From: Octopus bimaculoides
Lineage: Eukaryota
Assembly: GCF_001194135.2 (NCBI RefSeq)
Contig: NC_068983.1
Span: 140,522,850-140,586,849, forward strand
Length of the DNA: 64,000 bases
Reading direction: 5' to 3'
This document shows positions 25,636 through 26,964 of the stretch, piece by piece. The notes below the pieces were generated by a model, which saw only the letters and a list, made by a program, of their open reading frames with translations, made no database searches and was not told the DNA's origin. How positions within the stretch are numbered: the first letter of the stretch is position 1; the number at the start of each line of letters is the position of its first letter. Made by a program: the position numbers and the translations under genes.

Positions 25636-26964
25636 ATGGATTCCGTTTCTCAGAAAGAGAAATACTTTGAACATGGGTCGAAATTTGATATTATTCTGCA
25701 AATGGAGGATTACATTCAATACAGTTATTTAAAGGAGATCATCGTACTCTGCTTAAATTCAGATCTTTTAGTATCTAGTAATTTTTCTGATGACGCAAAA
25801 CAACTGGCAAATCATTACTTAAGCAATTTTGAAGAAAATGATGTTGGCGTTTATTCGGAGACCATTGGCGATGATTTCATAAGAAAAGATGTCACAAATT
25901 ATATTTTAGAGCGAGATGATGGCTTGGATCTAGAAGCAGATGAAGAGGTTCTCATTGACAATAATGAATGTTCATTATTGATTAATATCTTAGAATTTTT
26001 GATAGGTGCTCATATGAATAGTGGTTATGGCATTCTAATTCCGTATCCCTCATCACCTATTATTAGGGAAGCAGTTGAAATATGTGGGTTTTTGCCTGTC
26101 CCCTATTATTTGACAGAAGCAGCAGATCACTGGACAATTGAGGAAGAAGCACTTGTGAAAGCTCTAGAAGGATCTGATTGCAAGATAAATTGTATGATTT
26201 TGGAGAATCCTGGATATCCAACAGGTCATCTTTCTTCGGAAAAAGAACTGGAGATATTTTTCCGTGTGGCCAAAAATCATGGCATTGTGCTTATAGCAAT
26301 AGAAAATTTACAAATGGATGTTCATAGGAAAAACAACTTTTTATCATCCAGGAAAGCACTCATACAAATGGGTGAAATTTACAAATCTGTGCAATTAATG
26401 TCCTTGTTTTCGTCAGCTAGAAGTCCACAGGGTGACAAAGGTATGCACATAAGTTTCATTGATAGCTTCCGAATGGATAAGTTGACCTCAAAATTCGGCA
26501 ACCTTACCTTTACTTCCCCAGCTTCTATTCATCAAGTCTATTTAAGTCTTTTTCTAGCTCCAAAATATTTAAGAAAATACCCTTCATTCAGAAAATTCGA
26601 AAATGAAAGATACAACTTCATAGAACTACTCGGAAATTTAGCTGAAATTACCGTTGACTTTTTTAACTTACAGCCTTATATGTGTTGCAGCCGGGTATTC
26701 GCTGGCCATTGTGCTTTTCCTAAATTACTGTTTCCAACTCGGTGGATTACAAATCGAAATGAGCCTTTAGATCTCGAGGAAAGTTACTGCTGTGAACTAT
26801 ATGGAACTACAGGTATTTATGTTGTTCCTGGTAAAGTCTTTGGTGAAAATCCTGACAGTATGCATTTTAAATTTACATTTCCACTCGATCAAATATTACT
26901 TCATGAACAACTGGAGAAAATAAGACAATTTCATCAAAAATTTATACAATCTTTCATTGCTTAA
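25636..26964 (+). CDS. Intronless alanine aminotransferase-like protein (class I/II PLP aminotransferase fold), 442 aa from the ATG; predicted catalytically inactive (copy 2)
   Basis: Colinear with human ALT1 as recalled, over nearly the whole length. YLKEIIVLCLNSDLLVSSNFSDDAK ~ FLRQVLALCVNPDLLSSPNFPDDAK; GVYSETIGDDFIRKDVTNYILERDDG ~ GAYSVSSGIQLIREDVARYIERRDGG; GILIPYP..VPYYL ~ GVLIPIP..VDYYL; ENPGYPTG ~ INPGNPTG; TGIYVVPGKVFG..HFKFTF ~ TGICVVPGSGFG..HFRMTI. First ATG is at 25636 (the ORF track starts at a TTG, 25558). No introns, no stops. Confidence 0.9.
   Translation: MDSVSQKEKYFEHGSKFDIILQMEDYIQYSYLKEIIVLCLNSDLLVSSNFSDDAKQLANHYLSNFEENDVGVYSETIGDDFIRKDVTNYILERDDGLDLEADEEVLIDNNECSLLINILEFLIGAHMNSGYGILIPYPSSPIIREAVEICGFLPVPYYLTEAADHWTIEEEALVKALEGSDCKINCMILENPGYPTGHLSSEKELEIFFRVAKNHGIVLIAIENLQMDVHRKNNFLSSRKALIQMGEIYKSVQLMSLFSSARSPQGDKGMHISFIDSFRMDKLTSKFGNLTFTSPASIHQVYLSLFLAPKYLRKYPSFRKFENERYNFIELLGNLAEITVDFFNLQPYMCCSRVFAGHCAFPKLLFPTRWITNRNEPLDLEESYCCELYGTTGIYVVPGKVFGENPDSMHFKFTFPLDQILLHEQLEKIRQFHQKFIQSFIA

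Follow-up and report, generated by a model that had tools for sequence, protein, structure and literature searches.

We examined a 64-kb stretch (hereafter the window) of a 168-Mb Octopus bimaculoides chromosome, which has about 36% GC, frequent TA/CA microsatellites and 14 assembly gaps that together span 7.5 kb. Using the open reading frame (ORF) at 25636-26964 as the query, tBLASTn identified three copies homologous to alanine aminotransferase (ALT) in the window. The query itself, on the plus strand and here termed paralogue A, is an intact single-exon ORF of 442 codons plus stop, and encodes a predicted ALT-fold protein without the residues that bind pyridoxal 5'-phosphate (PLP). Paralogue B (36692-37738, plus strand) is open over its first 349 codons, up to an N gap (37741-38356); it is this gap, not a mutation, that interrupts the frame. 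The third copy (1702-2682, minus strand) is broken into three frames and is a dead pseudogene. A first-pass annotation of the window had read these copies as ALT-fold proteins that lost their cofactor contacts before the duplications, with two frames kept open by selection for a non-catalytic role. The two open frames are as it described them, its guess at a cephalopod source is correct, and its claims on the age of the losses and on selection hold up in the comparisons given below.

The relationship to ALT is evident from sequence and from the predicted structure. Paralogue A matches the Aminotran_1_2 family of Pfam (PF00155) with an E-value of 5.5e-13, and HMMER searches against the PDB found human ALT2 (PDB identifier 3IHJ, E 1.5e-45) and barley ALT (PDB identifier 3TCM, E 3.4e-31) as its best solved relatives; the octopus proteins are about 26-31% identical to real ALTs. 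An AlphaFold2 model of paralogue A, built with a 44-sequence alignment as input, has a mean predicted local distance difference test score (pLDDT) of 88.6 and a predicted template modelling (pTM) score of 0.88. The top Foldseek matches of this model in the PDB are 3IHJ, with a template modelling (TM) score of 0.82 and a root mean square deviation of 2.8 Å over 432 columns, and 3TCM with a TM score of 0.83, followed by other subgroup-I aminotransferases. Modelling thus recovers the ALT fold, and the fold-type I architecture is predicted to be complete except for the N-terminal ~80 residues. Homology to ALT begins at about residue 82 of ALT2, so that the EYAVRG/NIGDAQ region is absent, as had been noted earlier for EYAVRG. 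The first 22 residues of the octopus protein, which bear no relation to ALT, have a pLDDT below 50.

The roles of the Lys, Asp, Asn, Tyr and Arg residues that contact PLP and substrate are well established in the enzymology of aspartate aminotransferase (AspAT) and ALT. In paralogue A, Arg262 (codon AGA, 26419-26421) falls on the column of the Schiff-base Lys of the SxSK motif, both in the HMMER alignment with 3IHJ and in two MAFFT alignments of 44 and 15 sequences, and no alignment places a Lys at the catalytic column. AGA also occupies this site in paralogue B (37475-37477) and in the third copy (1893-1895, minus strand). The phosphate-binding TGAS motif reads NNEC in A and B (with NNEW and TNEG as variants), and PQYPLY, the first Tyr of which stacks on the PLP ring, reads PSSPII. 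The second Asn of NPGNPTG, a ligand of O3', is Tyr in the NPGYPTG of both paralogues (TAT codon at 26215), which in A lies within the segment ENPGYPTGH (residues 190-198, 26203-26229, plus strand). ADEVYQ, in which the Asp binds the pyridine nitrogen and the Tyr binds O3', is replaced by AIENLQ (residues 221-226 of A, 26296-26313, plus strand, with IENLQ beginning at 26299). The phosphate-binding Arg that follows the Lys is His271 in A (26446-26448, plus strand) and Gln in B, and the Arg of HFR, which binds the alpha-carboxylate of the substrate, is Lys412 (26869-26871, plus strand), such that HFRMT becomes HFKFT. Apart from the NNEW and TNEG variants, these replacements had been listed in the first-pass annotation, and all the residues and coordinates that it gave were confirmed.

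By comparison, the Lys is retained at the catalytic column in 95 of 104 other ALT representatives, and NPGNPTG and ADEVY are present in nearly all of them. Within the 44-sequence alignment, every ALT (100%) has the Asn of NPGNPTG and the C-terminal substrate Arg. We considered K268 as a relocated catalytic Lys and rejected it, since P0005 and P0006, the two distant family members introduced below, do not conserve it. The Asp at the pyridine nitrogen is required for the electron-sink role of PLP. Given the loss of this Asp, of both O3' ligands, of the phosphate Arg and of the Lys, PLP-dependent transamination appears incompatible with the octopus sequences, and the A and B proteins most likely do something other than transamination.

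Both paralogues have intact counterparts in other octopuses. O. sinensis has two intact genes (442 and 442 codons), as does O. vulgaris (442 and 441 codons). The orthologues of paralogue A are P0172 (O. sinensis) and P0174 (O. vulgaris), and paralogue B is the positional orthologue of O. sinensis XP_029633897 (P0002). In O. sinensis the A-type gene lies 13.2 kb upstream of the B-type gene, with order, orientation and syntenic flanks as in the window; A and B are thus arranged in tandem in Octopus, on the same strand and about 11-13 kb apart. The sole coding indel among the six Octopus genes is a one-codon in-frame deletion, of Glu101, in O. vulgaris paralogue A (L006).

Paralogues A and B are under purifying selection. 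Under a maximum-likelihood Goldman-Yang codon model, the ratio of nonsynonymous to synonymous substitution rates (omega) is 0.375 over 442 codons between the O. bimaculoides and O. sinensis A genes (obA-osA; likelihood ratio test against omega=1, p 6e-5) and 0.325 over 349 codons between the B genes (obB-osB; p 2e-5). Nei-Gojobori/YN00 estimates of 0.51-0.52 for the c1-os comparison and 0.34-0.35 for c2-os were judged consistent with these values. Coding divergence is 6.9-7.2%, as against ~11.5% in the syntenic non-coding flanks. No indel occurs in 2373 coding nucleotides where ~27 would be expected from the 87 gap openings in 7.5 kb of flank (11.6 per kb), a rate that is inflated because the flanks are microsatellite-rich; even at one third of the flank rate, the probability of zero coding indels is ~1e-4. 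In neutral simulations at flank-like rates, the frame remained free of stops in 0.04-0.3% of trials per gene. The omega near 1 and the frequent disablement of orthologues that the first-pass annotation had named as evidence against a selected family are therefore not what is observed, since the orthologues are intact and omega is below 1.

The third copy shows neutral decay and serves as an internal control for A and B. Across 993 nt its ancestral frame is interrupted by 8 stops and shifted by three deletions (1, 1 and 20 nt), a further 6 nt are inserted, and the copy is truncated near codon 331. It still has AGA at the Lys site, so the residue losses are older than this copy. The losses are common to A, B, the dead copy and the A and B orthologues of O. 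sinensis and O. vulgaris, and the cofactor-site losses, with the exception of that of the Lys, are also shared by P0005 and P0006; these comparisons support an origin of the losses before the duplications. A young, neutral processed pseudogene with frames open by chance would agree with the intronless coding region, with the clearly dead copy nearby and with searches that yielded no sign of expression. We regard this explanation as refuted, given the omega significantly below 1 in two independent orthologue pairs, the 0 indels observed against ~27, a probability of ~0.001 per gene of escaping a stop, the six intact gene copies in three species and the intact relatives at 38-43% identity.

Divergence between A and B is not uniform along the gene. 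Over the first 135 codons, the synonymous divergence (dS) between A and B is ~0.25, compared with 0.17-0.19 between orthologues, and A-type and B-type sequences cluster across species; the duplication is thus older than the divergence of O. bimaculoides from the lineage of O. sinensis and O. vulgaris. From about codon 136 onwards, A-B dS falls to 0.04-0.07 against an orthologue dS of 0.12-0.16, a pattern that marks within-species gene conversion, which homogenises the 3' two-thirds of A and B in each species. The homologous unit of the three copies begins ~285-315 nt upstream of the ATG (25345-25353 in A) and includes the conserved 5' flank of A (25345-25635, plus strand), which is common to A, B and the dead copy and is a candidate promoter or 5' untranslated region, as well as the homologous 5' flanks of paralogue B (36378-36691, plus strand) and of the dead copy (2683-3004, minus strand). 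At the other end, homology of A with O. sinensis B extends to ~27134, and beyond the gap there is a weaker match (71.5%) of 27185-27479 to 38438-38729. Conservation of the ~290-nt upstream block extends to all seven sequences aligned. Of its two GATA-like sites, TGATAAG does not vary among them and AGATAAG occurs in 5 of the 7. Indels pile up to just before the ATG and then cease, and the context of the ATG is conserved. The block could be a shared GATA-factor-dependent promoter, or could simply form part of the gene-conversion tract. A candidate TATA box upstream of A (TATAAGG, 25530) was rejected, as the other copies read AGATAAG.

Each of the six Octopus genes, and likewise P0005 and P0006, has an intronless coding region formed by one uninterrupted ORF, as is typical of a retrogene. 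Inspection by eye found no evident A-tract or direct repeats at the ends of the gene, which is flanked by TA/TG/CA microsatellites; in a gene of this age, such marks of retrotransposition would probably have been erased. In its relaxed omega, its tandem birth-and-death and its lack of introns, the family is similar to fast-evolving, tissue-restricted retrogenes.

Deep relatives of the octopus proteins were sought by an exhaustive HMMER scan of 1.84 billion protein representatives. Two proteins rank between the octopus sequences and all real ALTs, the best of which has ~31% identity (E 1.7e-46): P0005 (433 aa) at 43% identity with an E-value of 1e-104, and P0006 (436 aa as called, with a true ORF of 433 aa) at 38% identity with an E-value of 2e-88. 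Both are intact single ORFs on the same strand, ~90 kb apart on the 205-kb contig ctg118939l (ENA ERZ21867824). The metagenome gene caller translated an in-frame TGA of P0006 (L003 10001-11311) as Trp; under the standard code this TGA is a stop and the ORF is shorter by 3 codons. Neighbour-joining (NJ) bootstraps recover the family as monophyletic in 100% of cases and group the octopus proteins with P0005 in 98.5%, leaving P0006 basal. A word-indexed search with the family profile found no members beyond those known, and a scan of JGI metagenome contigs found none.

P0005 has Arg in place of the Schiff-base Lys and Ser in place of the phosphate Arg, and its remaining motifs read NRQE (for TGAS), PVSPSL (for PQYPLY), NPGYPTG, AIENLQ and HFK. 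P0006 keeps the Lys, and the stacking Tyr is retained in its PTYPTI, while it already has ENPGYPTGH, ALENLQ, AGME in place of TGAS, Ser for the phosphate Arg and HFK. As the basal P0006 still has the Lys, the Asp, Asn, Tyr and Arg were lost first and the Lys later. In its GC content (33-35%) and TA/CA microsatellites the contig looks cephalopod-like, and if the octopus rate of nonsynonymous divergence is extrapolated, a difference of 57% in amino acids might reflect a separation hundreds of millions of years ago. The contig also carries a LINE reverse-transcriptase ORF; of the 3276 matches to this ORF, the best 120 were all unnamed ENA proteins. DNA comparison of this contig with the octopus loci gave a single 104-nt repeat match, and Rfam gave no match on the contig. 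The ~100-nt repeat (L003 18156-18259 against window positions 23380-23475, also L004 5175-5275; 75-81% identity) may be the conserved core of a short interspersed nuclear element.

Across the three deep lineages (octopus, P0005 and P0006), 104 of 419 aligned positions are invariant, and these are concentrated in the former active site: 26 of the 54 sites in its loops, a set defined by motif and not by coordinates, are invariant, as against 78 of 365 elsewhere (odds ratio 3.4, Fisher p 7e-5). ENPGYPTGH, ENLQ and HFK are the longest invariant runs, the first being the longest of all. Several residues fixed in the family occupy sites that are 90-100% conserved for another residue in real ALTs (given in parentheses), namely E190 (Ile), Y194 (Asn), N224 (Val), L225 (Tyr), D228 (Asn), S263 (Gly) and K412 (Arg). 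Together with I/L222, these replacements are fixed across members that are 38-43% identical. The former pocket was remodelled and then conserved, and not left to drift.

The best explanation of these results, which we favour with moderate confidence, is that of a selected, ALT-derived family that does not transaminate and has a rebuilt pocket, and whose members would act as dimeric, non-catalytic binders or sensors. The PLP site was dismantled stepwise, with the Asp, Asn, Tyr and Arg going first and the Lys later. We propose that the rebuilt pocket, more hydrophobic but with a positive charge kept at the old carboxylate site, would accommodate a small ligand that bears a carboxylate and is not PLP. 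The data show the homology to ALT, the retained fold, the residue losses, the conservation, the purifying selection and the gene conversion; for the octopus proteins we infer a non-catalytic role, with loss of activity, binding of a ligand, dimerisation and expression.

Some observations weigh against such a family. The basal P0006 retains the Lys and the stacking Tyr, and residual cofactor chemistry may accordingly persist in part of the family. Part of the loop enrichment stems from residues shared with real ALTs, and the loop set is, as stated, motif-defined. An omega of 0.33-0.38 is relaxed for a homologue of a metabolic enzyme. Neither protein search returned transcript-derived (Logan) relatives, though coral ALT clusters contain such members, and expression may therefore be low, tissue-restricted or absent.

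The rebuilt pocket may also be read as that of a protein that is still an enzyme and carries out new chemistry there, whether independently of PLP, with PLP or pyridoxamine 5'-phosphate bound non-covalently, or with another cofactor. The conserved new residues include the polar E190, Y194, N224, D228 and K412, P0006 has the Lys and stacking Tyr just mentioned, and yeast Alt2 is an ALT paralogue without ALT activity that still binds PLP (PMC5960717). We nevertheless judge this distinctly unlikely: at least 5 independent PLP contacts, including the pyridine-N Asp, are gone in every member, and the only nearby Lys, K268, varies in P0005 and P0006.

Dimerisation raises another alternative. Aminotransferases of fold type I function only as dimers, with active sites that the two subunits share, and the loop that donates a Tyr to the PLP phosphate of the partner subunit (GxYSxxxG: G71, Y73, G78) is invariant in the octopus family. 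The octopus proteins could therefore be prozyme-type partners, dead subunits that heterodimerise with ALT or another fold-type I enzyme, tune its activity or stability and lend it interface residues. Precedents are the dead paralogues of AdoMetDC and DHS in trypanosomatids and the Serratia protein Ser4, a truncated fold-type I homologue that lacks the catalytic Lys and the terminal regions and is required for the activity of Ser5 (PMC11726168). In a prozyme, however, the protein's own dead pocket should drift, yet here it is the most conserved region and has family-specific fixed residues. The octopus proteins also lack the N-terminal arm that, in dimers of the ALT type, reaches around the other subunit. 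We thus consider a prozyme-type role rather unlikely, and a dimeric binder with a pocket of its own remains the reading that we prefer.

Cephalopods have recruited homologues of GST and ALDH as crystallins, and by this analogy, drawn in the first-pass annotation, the octopus proteins might be abundant structural proteins of a tissue, for example of the lens. Tandem duplication would suit a dosage-driven gene, but an abundant protein would be expected in transcript-derived protein sets, where none was found, and we found no paper linking an ALT-like protein to octopus tissues. As the collection searched holds transcript-derived ALTs of other animals, the lack of transcript-derived copies mildly disfavours the lens-crystallin idea. 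A purely structural role also leaves the strong conservation of the pocket unexplained, and such recruitment seems very improbable to us.

Among known systems, ALT itself (GPT/GPT2, EC 2.6.1.2, fold-type I subgroup I-gamma; PDB identifier 3IHJ) is the closest relative in sequence and fold, with the same domain order. The octopus family shares with it the structural residues P136, P138, P141, Y157, W166, N191, P192, E223 and S237 and the Tyr loop directed at the partner subunit. It differs from ALT in the changes Lys to Arg, Asp to Ile/Leu, Asn to Tyr, Tyr to Leu, phosphate Arg to His/Gln/Ser, GAS to NEC, stacking Tyr to Ser and carboxylate Arg to Lys, as well as in the missing ~80 N-terminal residues and the single-exon gene. 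RefSeq and UniProt name the octopus proteins 'alanine aminotransferase 1-like' and 'alanine transaminase'; since they differ from ALT at the cofactor and substrate sites, these names are probably functional misannotations.

Antizyme inhibitor is a homologue of ornithine decarboxylase that lost PLP binding. The trypanosomatid AdoMetDC and DHS prozymes are likewise enzyme-derived, lack catalytic residues and are under selection, though they belong to other folds and pathways. For the octopus proteins, a regulatory role is purely hypothetical. The closest named analogue is Alt2 of S. cerevisiae, an ALT paralogue kept after duplication without alanine transaminase activity or a known role (PMC3458083; PMC5960717); unlike the octopus proteins, which lost the PLP site, Alt2 retains all catalytic residues and PLP binding. 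Ser4 is like the octopus family in being Lys-less, in having lost terminal regions and in being encoded in tandem with a relative. However, it is bacterial, of the sugar-aminotransferase type, and adjoins its active partner, whereas no active ALT was found within the 64-kb window, where the neighbouring ALT homologues are all dead-site paralogues.

The Schiff-base Lys has also been replaced repeatedly (by Arg, Ser, Asn or His) in a vertebrate clade of 'alanine aminotransferase 1/2-like' proteins. Lys-less members include P0008 and P0155 (rays), P0010 (Albula), P0012 (Leucoraja), P0021 (Pleurodeles), P0032 (Chanos), P0053 (Pholidichthys), P0061 and P0065, and relatives in catshark, lungfish, bichir and bowfin retain the Lys. 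These proteins may be an undescribed set of ALT-derived pseudoenzymes. They rank unusually high among the matches of the octopus family (Mann-Whitney p 4e-5 to 9e-4) and have in common with it three otherwise rare residues, the His after PTG and an AG-for-GA swap; both observations may be taken as suggestive of a common origin. In contrast to the octopus family, most of them have NPGNPTG as well as the Asp and the phosphate Arg, their N-terminal region is preserved, several isoforms are predicted for them, and just 3 of the 32 family-specific octopus residues are found in them. The two groups are neighbours in a 54-sequence NJ tree. In a 119-sequence NJ tree, the Lys-less, AT-rich P0136 and P0141 are instead sister to the octopus family, probably through long-branch attraction, and the vertebrate sister relationship has a bootstrap of 21%. 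P0136 and P0141 are low-complexity, AT-rich-looking sequences that have ANESLQ/SNETFQ in place of ADEVYQ; with P0025, P0042, P0016 and P0119, they belong to the 8 of the 104 other ALT representatives without Lys at the catalytic column. A broader scenario, in which the pocket (E190, Y194, N224, L225, D228 and K412) was frozen as a metabolite-binding or cofactor-independent catalytic site, possibly in an ancient, so far unrecognised animal lineage of ALT-derived non-transaminases that includes the Lys-less 'ALT2-like' proteins of fish and amphibians, is one that we put forward tentatively, and doubt more than we credit.

There is ample documentation of pseudoenzymes among kinases, phosphatases and proteases, and a 2023 review of pseudoenzymes makes no mention of aminotransferases or PLP. 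Our searches of the literature on the octopus accessions, on octopus ALT-like expression and on aminotransferase pseudoenzymes found no paper describing the octopus family, and a search for ERZ21867824 likewise gave no paper. Homology, residue loss and purifying selection bring this family under the operational definition of a pseudoenzyme, with production of the protein presumed and its inactivity predicted. We regard it as a new family within a known kind, in which the loss of the PLP site is unusually complete and stepwise and a new pocket has become fixed. Stepwise loss of the PLP site followed by a new conserved pocket offers a natural series on a fold-type I scaffold without its cofactor, of relevance to specialists in enzyme evolution and cephalopod genomics. 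With these genes named as ALT, counts of ALT genes in cephalopods would come out too high and metabolic reconstructions would go astray, and the Lys-less vertebrate 'ALT2-like' genes may have the same effect.

The N gap 37741-38356 conceals the last ~93 codons of paralogue B, and O. sinensis has 689 nt between the flanking matches, which fits the sequence missing from the gap. The O. bimaculoides RefSeq models of paralogue B, XP_052822760.1 (272 aa) and XP_014769909.1 (360 aa), are either cut short or end in unrelated tails (…GDKVSTF; …PYICEEIFKEEYKN), probably as artefacts of this gap. Upstream of paralogue B, at ~0.5-2.5 kb from its ATG, a ~2-kb stretch (34135-36164) is missing from the syntenic O. 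sinensis locus. It contains an ORF of 410 aa (34599-35831, minus strand) that has no Pfam match; with its reverse transcriptase-like (YLDD) and GIY-YIG-like motifs it looks like a Penelope-type retroelement. No tRNA and no Rfam family were found in the 64-kb window, and Pfam recognised nothing in the neighbouring ORFs besides the helix-turn-helix domain of a Mos1/mariner-type transposase (PF17906, E 6.6e-19; 54444-54989, minus strand), which is broken by an N gap. A 54-nt exact duplicate (27784-27837 and 28469-28522) flanks a further N gap (27858-28468) and is probably an artefact of assembly or scaffolding.

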